A program made the position numbers and the translations under genes. The notes beneath the pieces are model-generated. The model did no database searches and was not told the origin of the DNA. It saw only the letters and a program-made list of their open reading frames with translations. DNA of 64,000 nucleotides, from contig JAHLWZ010000805.1 of NCBI GenBank assembly GCA_020536535.1, forward strand, positions 62,001 to 126,000, in the 5' to 3' direction. Shown here piece after piece: positions 10,641 to 62,591 of the stretch (the stretch's first letter is position 1; the number at the start of each line of letters is the position of its first letter). The DNA comes from Pelomyxa schiedti. Taxonomy: Eukaryota > Protista > Evosea.

Positions 10641-13564
10641 TTACTCTATTCCTTGCATGCGGTTGGATTCTGCAGACTGGCGCTTCTCCAGTACCAGTTG
10701 TAGTGATTTTCGTGTTTGCAAAAATGTGCTTTCTATGACACAGGCCTCTGATTCCAGGAAGGCCGTGCAGGCTGTGAGCTCTTCTCTGTTTGGCTCTGTG
10801 TGGCTGTCACAAAAGTGCAGAGCCTGACACACCATGCTGATTGGTAGGGTTGGGTTGTATGACTTGCATAGGATGAGGAGAGTTTGTGATCGCATGTGTG
10901 GTATCATTTGGTTCATGAGGTATTTCCCGTGGTTGGGCACGGTACCTAAAAGCCTGGGGGTGGAGTTCATTTAGATGACTAGTAAATTAAGTGATAGAAT
11001 GCACCCAAAGTACCTAAAAAACAGGCAGTAGTCATTCAGATTAACAGCTGAGACAACGGACAGTGCGTGAACAACAGCGGGGGCTGACATCAACTGAGGT
11101 GAAAGGTCGGCTATAACCTTGGTCATATCTGTGTATCACTAAGTCAAGGATATAAGGAATGTAAGGCAAACCAGTGGAGGATCTTCTTGAAGCGGTGAAG
11201 AGAACTCGGTAAGCAGCGAACTCCGCTTCATGCTGGCAATGACTAGCATGGACTTGATAGAGGTCAACAAGTTGCATCTGACACTGGTTGAACTCTCCCC
11301 AGTCATTCTGTGGGTGAAAAAAGTTAGATGACTTTTCTTTGCTCTTTGCTACTAACATTTTTCATGGCCAGTCTTGCATGAAGTTCATATACTTTGACGG
11401 TGAATACATTTTGAATATGTTGGACCATCAAGTCCTGTCTGATGCACTTCAGTTGCTCACATATGTAGGTGTAGTCAGGTGTGGAATGTGCGGGTGTTGC
11501 TGTAGATGCTGTTGTGTGGGCAGCGGCTGTTGTGGCAGCACTCCGAAGTTTTTGGAGAATCATTTTAAAGGATTGCTTGAGAACTCCCTCTGGTCGCACA
11601 GATGCGGGGTCAATGTCCTGTAAAGAAATTCACAACTTGTACTTGACATATTACATTATTTTCCAGTTTTATTATTAGTTAGGAGGGGGGAGGATATGTG
11701 GAGTGTAACTGAAGTTGTTCTCAGGTACTGTTTTTCTAAAGACTGTGATGTCCCAACAACCACAGGTGCCTCAGTTACATCATCAAACCCTACCACACCA
11801 CTGGAACTACCACCCCACCCACTTCTATCAATTTGAATTGATGGATGTTTGTCGATATAGAAGCCATTGAATCTGTCTTTGATCTTTGAGGCTGTTGTTG
11901 TTGGTGAATTCTCGGGGTCTGGGTCATCAAAGCCAAACCTCAATTTTCTTTTTTTTCGGCGCTCGGTTTCTTCTGGTGTTTCCCTAAGTTGGCTTAGAAA
12001 AAAAATCTCCTCTGTTGCTGTGAGGCTTACCATTTTTTCTTTTTCGGTTTATCAATTTTATCTTGTTTGGCCAGCTTCTGAAAGGGTTTCATCCCTTTTC
12101 TGCTGAGAAAAGTTTCAATCTTGCTAGGGGAAGGTGATGGCGAAGATGGAGTTGAAGTGGCGGCATCCTGGGAATCAGTTGATTTGGTGCTCCCCGCTTT
12201 CCTACACATTCTTAGTAACCTTTTCCTCAATAAGAATGGTACACACAGTGTAGGTGTAGGCTCTTTGTCCCAATCGCGGGTCCACATGATTTTTTTTGTC
12301 AGAGCATCGGTAATAATGTGTTTGAGCTGAATTTCTGTTTCATTTCGTTGTTCATCAGTAGAACAGGCCTGTTCCAAAGTTAGGAGAATATGGGGAGGCC
12401 TGCAGCCAACCTGGAAACAACGTTCAACGAAAGCACGAAGTTTTGGAGGGAAGTGTTGTGAATCTTCCTTGCTTTCAGTATTTGCTGGTTTTTCTTTTTC
12501 TTTGTCTTTGTCTGGCTTAATCTTTGGTGTTATTGCCACCCTCATCCTGAAGCCCTTTAATAGTAAGGAAAGGCATAAACAAGAAAAAAAAGTCAGATAC
12601 TCACGCAGCCTTGTGTTTTTGCTCAAGTAGCTGTAGTTGGATGGGTGTTAGCTGTGTGTTAGGTTGCTGTAAAACCATCCTAATTGTTTGTTGAGAGAAT
12701 ACATAAGCAAAAGGTGAACCCATACTGGTAATATGGCGAACTTCCGTATGCCCTGATAGAAAAAATAAGAACTAGGGGTTTGTGTTTGGGAAAAAAGAAG
12801 AGGGACCTACTGGTAATAATACGCTTGGAGGGATGCTGTGGCTTGCGCTGGAAACTGTTGTGATCGAGATGCCTGAGATACATCAGGTGTTGCAGGTTGT
12901 GTAACTATTGCAGGTGCGGCAGGAGAAGTATTAGGAAGAGTACTTGGGGAAGGTGTTGTCACATTCTGCGCGGCGTTGGTAGGTGTAGTTACTGCAGGCG
13001 TAGGAGTGGTGGTTTCGCCGCCGGGGGGTGTTTCAGCCGGGGTACCCGTCGAAGCGGCCGGCGTAGGTGATGGCGTGGATGATGTGTGCGTGGTACTAGT
13101 ACTACTACTAGCCGTAGTCGCTTGCTGCGCAGCAGCCCCCCTGCACATACACAGACAAAAGAAATTAGAAAGGTAATATACATGAATAGTGACGAGAGAA
13201 CCAAGGCCAGCCGACCATGGGCTGCTGCTGCTGCGAAACCGCGGCCGCCTGCTGCCCATAGTACCAATTATAGTACGCCGCGTACTGCTGCTGTTGCTGC
13301 TGCTGATACTGCAGTTGCTGCTGGTACTGCGCCGCCATCGCGGCCGTCGCGGGGCTCGCCGTGGGCGACTGGGCCGGCGAGAGAGGCGCCGCCGTGCTCG
13401 TGGCAGGAGATGTCGCAGCCGCAGTCGCCGGCGCCGCTGCGGGGGTCACTCCCTGCACCATTGGTCTCTGTTGCTGTTGCTGCTGTTGTGCGTAGGCTGC
13501 CCAGTACATGTTTTGTTGTTGCTGTTGAAACTGTTGCTGTTGTTGTTGTAGCTGGAGCTGCTGT

Positions 13565-13596
<32 letters not shown>

Positions 13597-13737
13597 TTGC
13601 TGTTGTTGTTGTTGGAGCTGTTGGGCGAAACCGTACCGAGAGGTGGTGGTGCCTATCGTGAAAGAAACACGGGTGGGTGGTGGTGGTTGCTGCGCGACGG
13701 GTGCCGCGGCAGCCGAAGTTGTCGCCACAGGTTGCAT
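10641..13737 (-). CDS. LENG8: SAC3/GANP-domain protein, LENG8/Thp3 type, with Gln/Ala/Pro-rich N-terminus
   Basis: [95 protein letters not shown]. The start codon is tentative. Confidence 0.85.
13513..13623 (-). repeat. CAG/CAA trinucleotide repeat encoding a poly-Gln tract in the LENG8-like gene
   Basis: Long (gtt/gct)n run on the + strand; translates as QQLQQQQ...QQFQQQQQ on the minus strand. Confidence 0.95.
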
Positions 13738-14875
13738 CACTTTGTATTGTATGTTTTGTTTTTTTTTCTTTTCTTTTCTTTCTTTTTCTTCTGATCTACA
13801 AGTAGATCAGCGGTTCTTTGGACCGACCGTACTCGTGGGCGCAGAGTACATGGTAAGGGTGGCACTTGCAGGTTCTGGCAGTGTCCGAGACTGCAAGGAT
13901 GTAGATCCTGTTGATCACAATAACGAAAAAGGCAGGACCAAAGAAAAAAACGGTACAGGCTTTAAAAGCGACACCATCAGAAATGCGTCACTTGCATATG
14001 TTGGGGACAGTTGTTGGGAGGGATGTTGATGTAAACGTAGTAGTAGCGAAGACTCTGTGACGTAGGAACAACAGTGTTATGGCAATTAACATTACTGAAT
14101 CGTTGATCAAGTATCAACGTTCTTGCAATGAGAGATCCAGCTAACAATTTACAGGTATTTATGACATGTCCTTTCTTTCTTTTTTTTTTATGATGAAGGA
14201 CATGGAATACAGGAGTTGGGATATAACTGTAGTTTCATCCAGTGTTTCTAAGGTCTAAACGTGCAGTTCCCATTGGCAATGTACTAACAAATCTTTAGAA
14301 TCCCCGATTTTTTCCCTTCTCAACTGTACCCCTCCAGCCAGCATTGTCCTGTGGCAAATACGTACACATTTTATTGGCAAACCTGGATTTATGGTACCCG
14401 TACTCCATAACTGGCGCCAAATGGGAGGTTCTTGTCACTACACAGTGTTGTGGGAGGTAGAGAGACTGCCCTCTACTGCACCACTTGACAAAACACTGAC
14501 GTTAGATAGTCAGTGTTTTAGTGTGTAGGCTTCAGGGAATGTAAGCAGTGATGGAAAGACTTTTGTTGTGTAAACGAATTTAAGAAATGCCCAGTTGTGG
14601 GCTTACCCCCTCCTCACACACCCTCTCTCACTCTCAACACTTGATGGAAGAAAACAAAGACCCAGCGTTGCAACACCAAGTTTTTTCCCCAATCAAAAAC
14701 TTTTTTAGTCTGTTCATGAACCCCAGCTTCTGAGCCCTGCCCCTTCCTTCTTGAGAGGAGTTGTAGCGAGGGTGTGGTGAAGTGCTGGCGCTGCTGCCAG
14801 TGATCCACCCACAATCACATGCGTGCAACCACCCTCCTCCGTGGTTTTGCGATAAAGTAGCCAAAAACAATATTT

Positions 14876-17800
14876 TTAACAGGCTTCTGCATCGGTACAG
14901 ACACCAGAACAGTACTGAACAACGTAGCCAGTCTCAAGAAACCGGGTGACTTGTTGTTGTCCAGCTGGTTCCCTGTGTTTTGGTAAGAATCGCACCAGCT
15001 CACTATTATTTGTAGTAGTAGTAGTAGTTCTTGTTTTTTATCTTAAGAAACTTTCGTCTACTATTTACACCATGTGAGGAGGAACTAGGACATACTGTTG
15101 TGGGCACATATGCACCATAGGGGCATCCTTATCCGCTGGAGCACTGACATCTGGCAGAGCCGGGACATCCTCATACTTCCATTCCACCATCCAGACACCA
15201 TTGTCCGGGGGAGGACAACAAGTGGGACGGGCCTCAGCCAACGGCCACACATCCCGATAAGCCGGATATATCAGGGTTGCATTGAGGGAACGGGCGTAGA
15301 AGTGGGTTGCATGGTTGCAGACAACTGGGTCATCAATGGCGGCTGAGGGAGTGAGGGAGGAAGGATGGAAGGAAGACGGGTTGTAATGGGATGGATAATG
15401 CGTGTTGTAAGTGTGGAGAAAGTTTACCTTGAATGAGGATAGGCTTATCCAGAGTATTCAGCCATCCTCCAACTTCGCCAGCATCCCAAATGATCTGGAG
15501 AGCATTAGCACTAAAAGAAAAAAACGTGAGAGAACCTGAAACACACTAAGCATAAGGCGTATGTCCCGTTGATCATAAAACAAGAAATTGATCATTATGG
15601 TATTGAAAATTTTGAACATTGAACTTCTTGGCAGTATAAGAGCAAATGGGGACCCTGCTACATTCGTAATTCCATGGTCCAACATGTCAGAAAGGGCAAT
15701 ATATGCTCCCCCAAGAATTCCACCTTCAGAATTTCCTTGAAAAGGTGTTAAAGTTTTGTGGAATTGGAAGAGTAAACCATAAAACCCAAATGCTGTTGGG
15801 TCAATTAAGGATTCCTCTGACACCTAATACCCAAACCCTAAACAATGCGTAAAGCTACATATTGAAGCATACTTGCAGTTCAGGTTCCCGAAGCATCTAT
15901 ATAATGTAAAGAAAAAAGGTATGGGGAAGATGCAGAATTGTGCAAACCTGATTTGTCATTAAATGGGTCATGAGGTTGGCATTTATAAAGGCTTGTTGTG
16001 TGCATTCAACAATGGAAACAAAATTGTCGGGATCGTTGAAGAGTATGTTCGAAAATACTAATAGATCAAGTCTTGAGAACCCATACCAGTCAACTGCATA
16101 TGTTATCCACTGATTTCTGATGTCGGTGGGCATGTTTATCAGTAGCAAAAGAAATACTTGTAAGCAAGATCTCTAATCCAAGACGCCTGAATTTCCGATC
16201 GATCCACTATTAGATGTTAGTACAATAAATTGAAAAAGGAGTATACTTAGCATGCTGTGGCCATATTGCATGATAAAGGATGGAGAAGGATTAAGAAGAA
16301 TACTGCAAGGCACTTCAATAAGGAATTGCACTTTTAGAGTTTCCCCTAGTGTCTGAATTGTCTGCTCACCAGGTCTGGAAATTAATCTTCCTCCACGATT
16401 TTTGGTAACAAACTTTGGTGCCTCAAAGAAACCTTTGGATAACCAGTTAACATTCAGTGCCTTGAAAGTGGATGTAGACCCCATATAGATTTTCCAATGT
16501 TTGACACGTTCGATTTGCACTCAGAGTTGTCGACACGTTCGATCGTGTATTGAAGAGAAGAATACAATGTTGCAGACTCTTGCAGCATTAGTTTTGCTCT
16601 TCCAAGACTATAGTCCTCACTGATCTATACTGGTGTTAGGGTTTCCAGCATCACTCAAGGCTATTATCGTACTGTTACAAAGTCCCAGGCAAGGAGTACT
16701 TCGTCGTCTGTCCACCCATCATCGTGCAAGAAAGCGAGAACCTGTGAATTCAGGTACTCCCACTCATCCCCAGTTTGATTTGTCATCACAGAATTGAAAT
16801 GGGGGGATCTCAGAATTTGCTCACCAGAATTAGAAATCAGGCCGCGAATCCCCATCACATACCTGGAGTTTTTTATTTATTGTATGGTGCTAAAAGAGTG
16901 GACACCTTGTTCCATGACTAAGGGCTTGTGCAGGTTGAATGATAAGTAGCGGATGCTCCTCATCCATTCCATCAAGTTCAACCCAATGTGCAACTCTCTT
17001 TCGAGTTGTTGTGTCTATGAGTACAGTTGTAGCATTGGGGTCAGTGTAATTCTCTGGATTTGCAGCTGTGATTGTCCCATTTGTGGATACATCTTCAAAG
17101 AAGCAAAGCAGAGGACCAGTGGTGGAAAATCCATCCATCTCGTTGAAAACATCAACCCCGATATGACTGAAGTGGAGTGCCTTGAGCAACGGAGTTGATT
17201 TTTCACCCAATGCAAGTTTCCATCCACTAGGTGTAGTGTTGTCAAGTTTCATGTAAAATGTTGATGGAAACGGGAGCATGCAGACCCCAGGATCATTTTC
17301 ATTGCATGTTGCGTAACAGTCAGGGTCTTGGTCCGAACATTTCCCGTGATCAGTGAACATCCCAATGACTGGCCCAGCAGTCACAATGATGACTGTACAT
17401 ACTAAAGCCACAGCAAAAAGTATAAAAATAACAATCACACAGCAGTGTAGCCGGGAGTAGGTTTTACAACACTTGTGTCTACACTTCTGGCAACGAGTAG
17501 TTTCTTTATTGTGATCGGGTTCCTCAAGGTGAATTTTGGAAAGAGTGCAAGAAAACGCACATGCCACAATGCACATGGTTATTGCAACAAACTGAACAAC
17601 AGCAGCAAAGATGTTGACAGAAAAGGAAGCAATGCAAACTGCATGGAACTCTTTCCAGTCTTCACATACTTGGCCATCGGGCTCCTCTGCGAACCACACA
17701 GATATGCCCATGGAGATGATAGCAAAAGCAGAAGACAGTAGTATATCAAACAATCCCCAAATTGCTGAAACTGCTACAGTGCAAGGTGATACATGAGGAG

Positions 17801-18176
17801 ATAAGAAAACAGGGGACTTTGGAGCATTGTCATCCATATCATAGCTAGCATCATTTGCCCCAGGAAATTCCTCAGCCAGTCTCTGGAATCCAGCATTTTT
17901 GGAATTTGCCCTTTTCAGTCGCTGCCTTTTCTCGATCTCCTTCTCGGAATCCCCCGGCTGCCTTTGGGTGACACGGGTGGGACTAGATGTGGCCAGAGCG
18001 ACGCTCCCATTGACAGTCATTGAGATTACACCCAAAAATCCAGGTATACATGCGACCCACACACGGCCCGTGACGAACCAAGTTATGAAAGCCACAAGAA
18101 GGCCTCGACTGAGACCCACAATTGAGGCGATGGTGTGCATTATCGTGTTGACTGCAAATACCGGACCCAGTTTCAT
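14876..18176 (-). CDS. Multi-TM-anchored protein with a bacterial-type alpha/beta-hydrolase (lipase-like) ectodomain
   Basis: About five hydrophobic segments, then CMLPFPSTFY..NEMDGFSTTGP..HWVELD..LIIQPAQALSHGTR|YVMGIRGL..LAWDFVT..QYGH..AVDWYGFS..GNSEGGILG (GxSxG) ..QQVTRFLETGYVVQYCSGVC-stop. This series of motifs recalls an actinobacterial/myxobacterial secreted hydrolase family. Confidence 0.7.
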
Positions 18177-18672
18177 CCGGCTCTTTCTGTTTGGTTTCCC
18201 CACCCCCAAAGCATCGTGTTTCCAGTTATTCGGCGCCGAGAGGACGAAAAAAAAAAATAAAAGTGAAGAACAAAGTATGGGAGGAATTACGTGGCGCCAT
18301 TGGGAAGAAGTGGGAAGTCGACATCGTCAGAGGCGGAAGGAGATGCCTTCATCAGTGTGTCGTTCTAGTTTGTTTTGGGGAATACTGTTTTTCATAATAA
18401 TTTTGGTCCTTCGTCGAAGATCTCACTGCAGAAGCACTTCTGATTTCGAAATCCCAGACCACGGGGGTTGGAGTACGCACATCTGTACGTTGAGGATTGT
18501 CCCTGGGCATTGTTGCAACCGCAGTACCTTTTTTCCGGAAACAACCTGCAGGATCCATTAGTTGAAAATCTCGTTGTCCTCCATTGAACACCCAACAAAA
18601 AGAAAAAATAAGTAACCAAAAAAACCATCTTCAATGTTGCTACTGGCTAGCTGTTGGTGTGCCTTCCTCATT

Positions 18673-50370: not shown

Positions 50371-50560
50371 ATACCTTCTCGGCCTTTTGGCTAAGATCAA
50401 GTGTAGTATCTGTTCTTTTCAGCTTAATATCTGAAAGCTGCCCATTGGGTAGCATCGATATTAAACTTATTTTTCGTGGGGTCGCCGGGGGCGTCCTCTT
50501 GGTGGTGGGGCTTGCTCCGCCGTCAAGTTGGGTGCCCTCCTGATTGCCCAGGCACTGCAC
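50371..50560 (+). ncRNA. U2: U2 spliceosomal snRNA
   Basis: ATACCTTCTCGGCCTTTTGGCTAAGATCAAGTGTAGTATCTGTTCTTTTCAGCTTAATATCTGA is the near-invariant U2 5' end with branch-pairing GTAGTA (50403-50408); Sm-like ATTTTTC at 50469; 3' stem GTGCC...GGCAC enclosing ATTGC. The 3' end is approximate. Confidence 0.95.
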
Positions 50561-50701
50561 TGCCGCCTCGTGTGGTCAGCCCCACATTCCAAGAAAAAGA
50601 AAAACCACGGAATTTGATGATCACAACGGCAACGAAACGACACGAAAGGAGTGCACACTTGAACAAATTTACACTCAACAAAGTGGGTCACAAACGAAGA
50701 A

Positions 50702-61977: not shown

Positions 61978-62591
61978 AATCCCTCTATCCCGCTTGTGAT
62001 AGTGCAATATTAGAAAAACAAGTCCAAACACCCAAAAGAAAATATCACGAGCCAAAACAAACGCAAAAGTATAAACCAACAGCAAAAAGCCAAGGCATAT
62101 CACAGCTCAAAAAGAAAAATCAAAAACATAAACACAATCACACAAATGAAACACACAATATGAGGTCAGCAGCACATGTCAGTATTGATTCTTTCTCCTC
62201 CTTGCAAAGTATGTTGTTCATTTTATGCAATACCACTCGAGCTGGCCAGGCACCCCTCGGGATTGTGGGAGATACCGTCGATGTCATGTCCTCGCTTTCC
62301 CTTTTTCAGGTTTTTTTTTTTTTTGTTGTTTGCTGCTACGAGACACAACGACCTCGACCGGCATCGCGTGTCACATCAGAATAGTTACCAGAAAATTTTT
62401 CGATATCTGAATAAAATAATCAACAGACCGGAACGCTGTCATTTTCCTTGTTGTCTCTCAGGATCGGCGGTCTGGTGTTTTTTTATTTCGCCATCTTTAG
62501 CTACGGTGAAGGGGATTTCTAGCTAAAGCAAACTTTTGGACCAAGAATTTAGATTAAAATTGTTAATGTTGGCACTAGGATGAATGCTTGG

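Follow-up and report, generated by a model that had tools for sequence, protein, structure and literature searches.

The 64,000-nucleotide stretch analysed here (the window; positions 62,001 to 126,000 of contig JAHLWZ010000805.1 of the amoeba Pelomyxa schiedti) carries on its minus strand a gene for a membrane protein with a large hydrolase domain. The gene corresponds to a 920-residue GenBank entry named "LigA protein [Pelomyxa schiedti]", designated P0292 below. A first-pass annotation made from the sequence had described the span 14876-18176, which is the portion beginning at an internal ATG at 18176, as a bacterial-type hydrolase fused to a eukaryotic membrane anchor, continuous in a single open reading frame. 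We conclude that the product is an alpha/beta-hydrolase tethered to the membrane by a distinctive, conserved module of five transmembrane (TM) helices, that the gene has a GenBank entry but is misnamed there, and that it belongs to an old, widespread, undescribed and uncurated eukaryotic family. The protein is likely to be an extracytosolic multi-pass membrane serine hydrolase of the esterase or lipase type. The gene model is listed below; exons 2 to 12 are placed by RNA joints and the reading frame.

14876..18352, minus strand: whole coding region, GenBank product P0292, 920 residues, 13 exons
18291..18352, minus strand: exon 0, encoding Met1-Ala20 and ending two bases into the Thr21 codon (P0292 model, translation checked)
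18187..18290, minus strand: intron 0, GT..AG, 104 nucleotides, implied by P0292, no RNA confirmation
16906..18186, minus strand: exon 1, end of the N-terminal tail, five TM helices and the first ~125 residues of the ectodomain (PFPS, DGFS, WVELD)
16673..16862, minus strand: exon 2 (LAWDF)
16480..16624, minus strand: exon 3
16247..16432, minus strand: exon 4 (YGH), His618 codon at 16257-16259
16158..16206, minus strand: exon 5
15948..16116, minus strand: exon 6 (DWYG)
15873..15896, minus strand: exon 7, 24 nucleotides
15778..15823, minus strand: exon 8, ending within a Gly codon of GNSEGG
15536..15735, minus strand: exon 9, Ser720 codon TCT at 15728-15730
15428..15494, minus strand: exon 10
15096..15342, minus strand: exon 11, Asp811 codon at 15329-15331 and His884 codon at 15110-15112
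14876..14972, minus strand: exon 12, Q..FL..G...C, the conserved C-terminal cysteines and the TAA at 14876-14878

Contigs from four public sequencing runs, two of DNA type and two of single-cell RNA (transcriptome), were aligned to positions 14700-18400. Both DNA-type runs spanned the full 3.7 kb with one contig each. The RNA contigs covered 14876-17028 and joined the 3' end of exon 1 to every later exon through 11 joints, all of which read CT..AC on the plus strand, that is, GT..AG on the minus strand; the exon 1 stretch 16904-17028 was tied to exons 2-4 by one RNA contig. The introns confirmed in this way (introns 1-11: 16863-16905, 16625-16672, 16433-16479, 16207-16246, 16117-16157, 15897-15947, 15824-15872, 15736-15777, 15495-15535, 15343-15427 and 14973-15095) are 40-123 nucleotides long. 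The joined exons read as a single open frame that begins with the ATG at 18176, runs for 896 codons and ends with the TAA at 14878-14876, and all 896 residues were 100% identical to residues 25-920 of P0292. The RNA joints and the open frame thus confirmed that this is one spliced, fused gene. In the raw list of open reading frames (ORFs), the gene appears as a 439-codon ORF at 16890-18209, which runs 16 nucleotides into intron 1, and as short downstream ORFs in shifting frames. The full-length analyses were performed with the public protein P0292, and the coding sequence in the window was itself searched exon by exon. No second copy of the gene was found in the 64-kb window.

The true start is probably the ATG at 18352 in the upstream exon, since the GenBank model uses exon 0 and its DVDFPLLPN sequence is conserved in the paralogue P0001. 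Exon 0, which lies outside the RNA contig coverage, would encode a cytosolic N-terminal tail with this acidic dileucine-like sequence. The published P. schiedti genome has an intron density of 7.4 per gene, and 98% of its introns are of the GT-AG type (PMC8887013); the 12 introns of this gene are therefore ordinary for a resident gene. The strong bacterial homologues of the hydrolase half are the sole reason for considering an artefact, either an error of assembly or annotation or a bacterial contaminant falsely joined to an amoebal membrane protein. No positive evidence speaks for such an origin, and its probability is negligible: the junction lies within one exon with no stop codon, two independent DNA-run contigs each span the whole 3.7 kb, 11 spliceosomal introns in the hydrolase half are removed in RNA, and the same architecture is present in other species. 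Exon 1 encodes both the TM region and the first ~125 residues of the hydrolase domain, so the earlier statements that the fusion is continuous in one ORF and is not a splicing artefact hold.

The product is divided into a membrane module and an ectodomain, with the following coordinates.

17355..18167, minus strand: five-helix membrane domain (AlphaFold, and hydropathy)
17655..17687, minus strand: TM3-TM4 loop EEPDGQVCEDW, on the predicted extracytosolic side
14879..17312, introns included, minus strand: ectodomain (P0292 residues ~313-920), an N-terminal beta-rich part followed by the alpha/beta-hydrolase core

Every motif of the previously listed series was present in the ectodomain and in the listed order. 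In 896-residue numbering, PFPSTFY is located at 302, DGFS at 348, WVELD at 398, LAWDF at 481, YGH at 592, DWYG at 623, GNSEGG, which is interrupted by intron 8, at 694, and Q..FL..G...C at 873-886. The proposal of an alpha/beta-hydrolase in the C-terminal ~600 residues was likewise supported, both by structure matches and by the Ser-Asp-His columns of the family alignment. The AlphaFold model of a paralogue ectodomain, based on a 54-sequence alignment, reached a predicted local distance difference test score (pLDDT) of 94 and a predicted TM score (pTM) of 0.94, and the full-length model of the window protein a pLDDT of 87.6 and a pTM of 0.84. A Foldseek search with the paralogue model returned CE7 and CE15 esterases, S9 peptidases and a PETase (E ~1e-10 to 1e-8, best 2e-10). 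With VIA-align, residues ~240-600 of the same model matched ~50 different alpha/beta-hydrolases at Z 17-20, with a root-mean-square deviation of ~3-4 A over 230-300 aligned residues; residues ~540-905 of the window-protein model matched the same neighbours at Z 16-19. A shape search of the ESM-Atlas aligned the whole 600 residues at a TM score of 0.92 with hypothetical-protein clusters from Myxococcota and Actinomycetota.

By these matches, the predicted fold is the canonical one of alpha/beta-hydrolases, a central, mostly parallel beta-sheet with flanking helices. The G-x-S-x-G elbow, GNSEGG at P0292 residues 718-723, is positioned between strand 709-719 and helix 721-732. The putative triad follows the order nucleophile, acid and histidine, with Ser720, Asp811 and His884 at conserved columns, and YGH618 is a putative oxyanion-hole motif of the HG type. 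Ser720 and His618 were invariant in 48 of 48 aligned sequences, the Asp811 column in 42 of 42 ungapped sequences and the His884 column in 44 of 45, and all four residues are kept in the window protein. The ectodomain also contains seven N-x-S/T sequons and conserved cysteines at positions 315, 323, 886, 910, 914 and 920, the last being C-terminal; the cysteines and sequons fit with an extracytosolic domain.

Sequence searches against domain and structure collections did not assign the ectodomain to a known family. No matches were obtained in Pfam and NCBIfam scans exon by exon, in a Pfam search with full-length P0292 at E ≤ 1, or at threshold in Pfam and NCBIfam scans of the bacterial family members. 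Searches of the PDB gave nothing significant with the exons and, with the family profile, a best match at E 0.38 (an enol-lactonase, at the elbow), which is also not significant. On none of the family members examined did a Pfam or NCBIfam model attain its threshold; the only signals were sub-threshold ones for Abhydrolase_1, Lipase_bact_N, Peptidase_S9 and AXE1.

The best Foldseek matches, at E 2e-10, were CE7 acetyl xylan esterases and cephalosporin-C deacetylases (AXE1; 1vlq, 3fcy, 7xmj). These superpose at Z 18-19 over ~295 residues, but with an identity of only 11-13%. The family consensus GxSQGG resembles the CE7 elbow GxSQG, and bacterial members have H-E at the catalytic histidine, similar to the 'HE' motif of CE7 enzymes. 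CE7 enzymes are cytosolic hexamers, and they lack the ~230-residue N-terminal beta-rich part and the membrane anchor of the present protein. Membership in AXE1 (PF05448) was not supported, with no match for P0292 at E ≤ 1 and matches at E ~1.5e-3 in only two of 54 relatives. The N-terminal ectodomain of four of the 54 members gave sub-threshold matches to Lipase_bact_N (PF12262; best E 7e-4), a domain that is also carried by Atlas feature neighbours. The best relative scored 18.9 bits against a gathering score of 22.3, and the window protein gave no match. PF12262 lipases and many of the bacterial members are alike in being alpha/beta-hydrolases that are secreted or held by a lipid anchor and have an accessory domain at the N-terminus, although kinship is unproven.

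The same comparisons bear on the alternative that a protein of identical topology displays an S9- or S33-like serine exo- or oligopeptidase, which would break down proteins or peptides at the surface or in phagosomes. The top VIA-align match of both models was an S9 carboxypeptidase (Z 19.9 and 18.9), followed by many acylaminoacyl and prolyl peptidases, and the GxSxGG elbow is also typical of S9 enzymes. However, esterases were found within one Z unit, so that the ranking is a tie, CE7 and CE15 esterases ranked first in Foldseek, and the Lipase_bact_N and AXE1 hints point the opposite way. Sub-threshold Peptidase_S9 matches occurred in three of the 54 members at E ≥ 1.6e-3 only, and the ~230-residue beta-rich pre-domain is not a beta-propeller: none of the top 50 solved chains aligned it as one. 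We consider a peptidase unlikely but a rival to be taken seriously.

The N-terminal part contains five TM helices, as had been proposed, at P0292 residues 28-60, 63-87, 155-187, 196-241 and 266-298; the AlphaFold model (pLDDT 80-97 over the helices) and hydropathy agree on them. Stretches rich in Lys and Arg are found in the N-terminal tail and in the TM2-3 and TM4-5 loops, whereas the TM3-4 loop is acidic. The odd number of helices and this positive-inside pattern predict an N-in/C-out orientation with the hydrolase domain on the extracytosolic side, a placement that is also suggested by the lipoprotein and secretion signals of the bacterial homologues. The module had been described as having cysteine-rich loops. 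Its cysteine richness was confirmed, but extracellular loops as the location were ruled out: most of the cysteines belong to the TM helices or to the TM4-5 loop on the cytosolic side. The richness is lineage-specific, with 14-18 cysteines in the N-terminal ~310 residues in Archamoebae as compared to mostly 3-12 elsewhere (≤15 in two sequences). The sole well-conserved motif of the TM domain is E-P-D-G-x5-W in the TM3-4 loop, which is retained from Archamoebae to Ectocarpus and Triparma, while the rest of the module is poorly conserved. An Atlas feature search with the TM domain gave scores <0.8, corresponding to noise, and identified no relative of the module.

The cytosolic N-terminal tails carry acidic dileucine-type motifs with a Pro-Leu-Leu core (DFPLL, ESTPLL, EADPLL and DQAPLL). 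The pattern [DE]xxPLL or DxPLL was present in the tails of all four Pelomyxa paralogues, of one environmental relative and of Ectocarpus, and these motifs give only a hint of endolysosomal sorting.

Of 1.84 billion representatives searched by phmmer with exon 1 alone as the query, 700 matched at E ≤ 1e-3 and 117 at E ≤ 1e-10, so that the observation is not a product of chance. In a word-indexed protein search, residues 290-439 of exon 1 gave no match, and a eukaryote-only profile retrieved only 10 proteins because its words were drawn from the variable first 500 residues. The homologues fall into two classes. Members of the first are ~640-710 residues long, with PFPS 35-90 residues from the start and no TM helix, and all named members are bacterial (Myxococcota, Polyangiales, Nannocystis, Streptomyces and other Actinomycetota, Halioglobus and Kiritimatiellia). 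Members of the second are ~800-1100 residues long with 4-5 predicted TM helices ahead of PFPS, and all named members are eukaryotic: P. schiedti paralogues (KAH3760200.1, KAH3766727.1 and KAH3732857.1, with 63%, 47% and 46% identity to the window protein), Mastigella eilhardi, Echinamoeba exundans, Ectocarpus and Triparma. Contigs that hold unnamed members of the second class carry eukaryotic neighbour genes (LCIB, split genes, Ndc80, SNF2-bromodomain, Mpv17 and tRNA-intron endonuclease). Approximately 40 of 110 sampled clusters at 50% identity had a multi-TM N-terminus.

The window protein belongs to the family as a whole, as seen from BLASTP matches of residues 280-896 to bacterial members at E 1e-116 to 1e-152, family profile matches at E 1e-190 to 1e-230, and the presence of the ordered motifs and conserved cysteine pairs. 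It also belongs to the eukaryotic five-helix subfamily, based on its TM helices, its E-P-D-G-x5-W loop and its placement in the eukaryotic clade. The paralogues and the proteins of Mastigella, Echinamoeba, Ectocarpus siliculosus (CBJ27425.1) and Triparma (GMH73986.1) have the same architecture and group in the same clade, with 23-39% identity to the window protein beyond the paralogues. They differ in that the N-terminal tails and the TM4-5 loop are unconserved and in that the cysteine-rich cytosolic loop is found only in Archamoebae; P0002 and P0003 have 230-400 extra N-terminal residues. The architecture, which the first-pass annotation had proposed as novel, is thus specific neither to this gene nor to amoebae. 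It had been set down that a fusion both widespread and already described would speak against the proposal; the fusion is widespread, but our literature searches found no description of it or of the family.

The names given to the four paralogues in GenBank are spurious: P0292 and P0001 are called 'LigA protein', and P0002 and P0003 'ATP-dependent DNA helicase RecG'. The latter misnaming probably spread from an Atlas cluster of actinobacterial homologues that were automatically named RecG.

The bacterial relatives expected in Myxococcota and Actinomycetota were found. They are uncharacterised lipoproteins or secreted hydrolases of ~640-710 residues, annotated as 'hypothetical protein' or in some cases 'RecG', and they share the whole ~600-residue ectodomain at 33-37% identity, including the series CDPLD..C.LPFPS, DGFS, LAWDF, YGHGLFG, DW.GMS, GxSQGG, GD..V, H.C.R and the cysteine pattern of the C-terminus. 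The predicted structures superpose at a TM score of 0.92. They differ from the window protein in having a lipobox or signal peptide, in lacking the TM domain and introns, and in being separated from it in the tree by a branch with full support. A lipobox, L-[AT]-[GA]-C, stands at the start of many bacterial members, such as P0180, P0215, P0304, P0217 and P0295. Bacteria, too, thus commonly tether this enzyme to the membrane, although with a lipid anchor instead of TM helices.

An unrooted maximum-likelihood tree was inferred from 110 ectodomains with IQ-TREE (LG+C20 model, quick search). The tree splits into two sides, each with a Shimodaira-Hasegawa-like approximate likelihood ratio test (SH-aLRT) support of 100. 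One side, with 41 rows, contains every named eukaryote and all 32 rows with at least three TM helices, together with eight rows with 1-2 helices called and one without any. The other, with 69 rows, contains all of the named bacteria, and multi-TM proteins are absent from it. Pelomyxa and Mastigella (Archamoebae) form one clade within the eukaryotic side with a support of 99, and no bacterial sequence is nested with Pelomyxa, contrary to what a recent transfer from bacteria would predict. A relative on a 165-kb environmental eukaryotic contig (L008:5001-8155), 34-50% identical to the window protein, has the same long first exon with the TM module and the start of the ectodomain. Its alignment breaks at window residues ~424, ~760 and ~865, which correspond to introns 1, 9 and 11, suggesting that at least three intron positions are conserved.

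These results weigh on the idea that Pelomyxa recently gained a bacterial secreted hydrolase and fused it de novo to a multi-pass anchor, giving an architecture found only in amoebae. The identity of 33-37% to bacterial homologues over the whole ectodomain and the bacterial clusters at a TM score of 0.92 are in line with it, and the short branch between the eukaryotic and bacterial groups makes some transfer at some time plausible. On the other hand, the combination of five TM helices and hydrolase occurs in three Pelomyxa paralogues, Mastigella, Echinamoeba, Ectocarpus, Triparma and many environmental contigs, all five-helix forms lie on one side of the branch, for which the SH-aLRT is 100, and on that side the Archamoebae form a single group. 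The 12 introns of the gene, at least three of which have counterparts at the same positions in a distant relative, make it very unlikely that Pelomyxa acquired the gene laterally in recent times. Of the claim that the gene was laterally acquired, the bacterial kinship stands and the recent acquisition does not. An ancient inter-domain transfer, in either direction, is possible.

Under the preferred reading of the protein as an extracytosolic esterase or lipase, the cytosolic tail and five TM helices would present a ~600-residue, disulfide-bonded and probably N-glycosylated ectodomain either on the cell surface or inside endosomes, lysosomes or phagosomes. Ser720 in GNSEGG would act as the nucleophile, Asp811 as the acid and His884 as the base, with YGH618 contributing the oxyanion hole. 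The reaction would be carboxylic-ester hydrolysis of non-cytosolic material, for example ingested bacterial envelopes or lipids, or the outer-leaflet lipids of the host membrane, and the conserved five-helix module would stand in for the lipoprotein or secretion signal that the bacterial sister family has. The leaning towards esterase or lipase activity is weak; it derives from the type of elbow, the first rank of carbohydrate esterases in Foldseek, the sub-threshold Lipase_bact_N and AXE1 signals, and the gene neighbourhoods of two bacterial copies. In Streptomyces sp. (L007:5112-8016), the start of the homologue overlaps the end of a GDSL-family lipase gene by 14 nucleotides on the same strand, and both may be translated together as lipolytic partners; an acyl-CoA dehydrogenase gene abuts another bacterial copy. 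ABHD6, ABHD12, PGAP1 and similar eukaryotic alpha/beta-hydrolases are likewise membrane-tethered serine hydrolases that act on membrane-surface lipids, but they are not known to belong to a common sequence family with the present protein or to have a five-helix module or a 230-residue beta-rich pre-domain. ABHD6 and ABHD12 have a single N-terminal TM helix.

Several observations weigh against this reading. No family member has been characterised, and we infer activity, substrate class and cellular location. The list of structural neighbours is flat, with peptidases, carbohydrate esterases, lipases and thioesterases all at Z 16-20, so that the fold does not pick a substrate class, and no conserved partner gene was found in the bacterial neighbourhoods at four loci. 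The topology is a prediction throughout, a generic dileucine pattern is by rough calculation expected by chance in about one in seven tails of this length, and the TM-coding part, 17029-18352, lies outside the RNA contig coverage, although the TM-coding 5' part and the RNA-covered part belong to the same continuous exon. At the active site, the window protein has GNSEGG where the family consensus is GxSQGG, and YGHS where the consensus is YGHG. In its paralogue P0001 (KAH3760200.1), Asn occupies the position of the catalytic His (PKVNDC as compared to PMVHMC).

The last two points also speak for a pseudoenzyme, that is, a receptor, adhesin or binding protein without catalytic activity in which only a hydrolase-like fold is kept. 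P0001, located on another P. schiedti contig, is the closest paralogue at 63% identity; it retains the Ser and Asp of the triad and may itself be a pseudoenzyme copy, and its loss of the His suggests non-catalytic roles within the family. In the window protein, however, Ser720, Asp811, His884 and His618 are all present at invariant or near-invariant columns, and we give the pseudoenzyme explanation a slight chance for this gene.

A further question is whether the five-helix module does more than anchor the extracytosolic hydrolase. One helix would be enough for tethering, yet five have been kept from amoebae to brown algae, the conserved E-P-D-G-x5-W motif lies in the predicted extracytosolic TM3-4 loop, adjoining the ectodomain, and the high full-length pTM of 0.84 suggests that the two halves are packed in a fixed manner. 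Cooperation of the module with the enzyme could consist in feeding membrane lipids, or lipid-linked substrates of the cell's own or the phagosomal membrane, to the active site or in gating the lid, but we regard this as speculative and on balance doubtful.

Two other features of the window were recorded. A complete U2 spliceosomal small nuclear RNA gene is located at 50371-50585 on the plus strand (Rfam RF00004, 141.7 bits, E 6e-29). Just downstream of the hydrolase gene, at 13165-13740 on the minus strand, an ORF with very long poly-Q and Q-rich runs lies in a GC-rich (62%) patch and is probably a piece of a neighbouring gene.

Taken together, the gene provides no evidence of either a recent bacterial transfer or an amoeba-specific invention. 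It represents a large family, with ~700 clusters at 50% identity in bacteria and at least two eukaryotic supergroups, which is covered by no Pfam or NCBIfam model, has no characterised member and is publicly named "LigA protein" and "RecG helicase", which is plainly wrong. The eukaryotic branch represents a conserved and unusual display of a serine hydrolase on the extracytosolic face of the membrane. If the module and the enzyme were to cooperate, the family would constitute a new class of lipid hydrolase that is integral to the membrane and has soluble proteins or lipoproteins as its bacterial sisters. Its host is an anaerobic amoeba that feeds on bacteria, harbours symbionts and has four paralogues, and the protein is a reasonable candidate there for a role in the digestion of prey or the remodelling of endosymbiont membranes.

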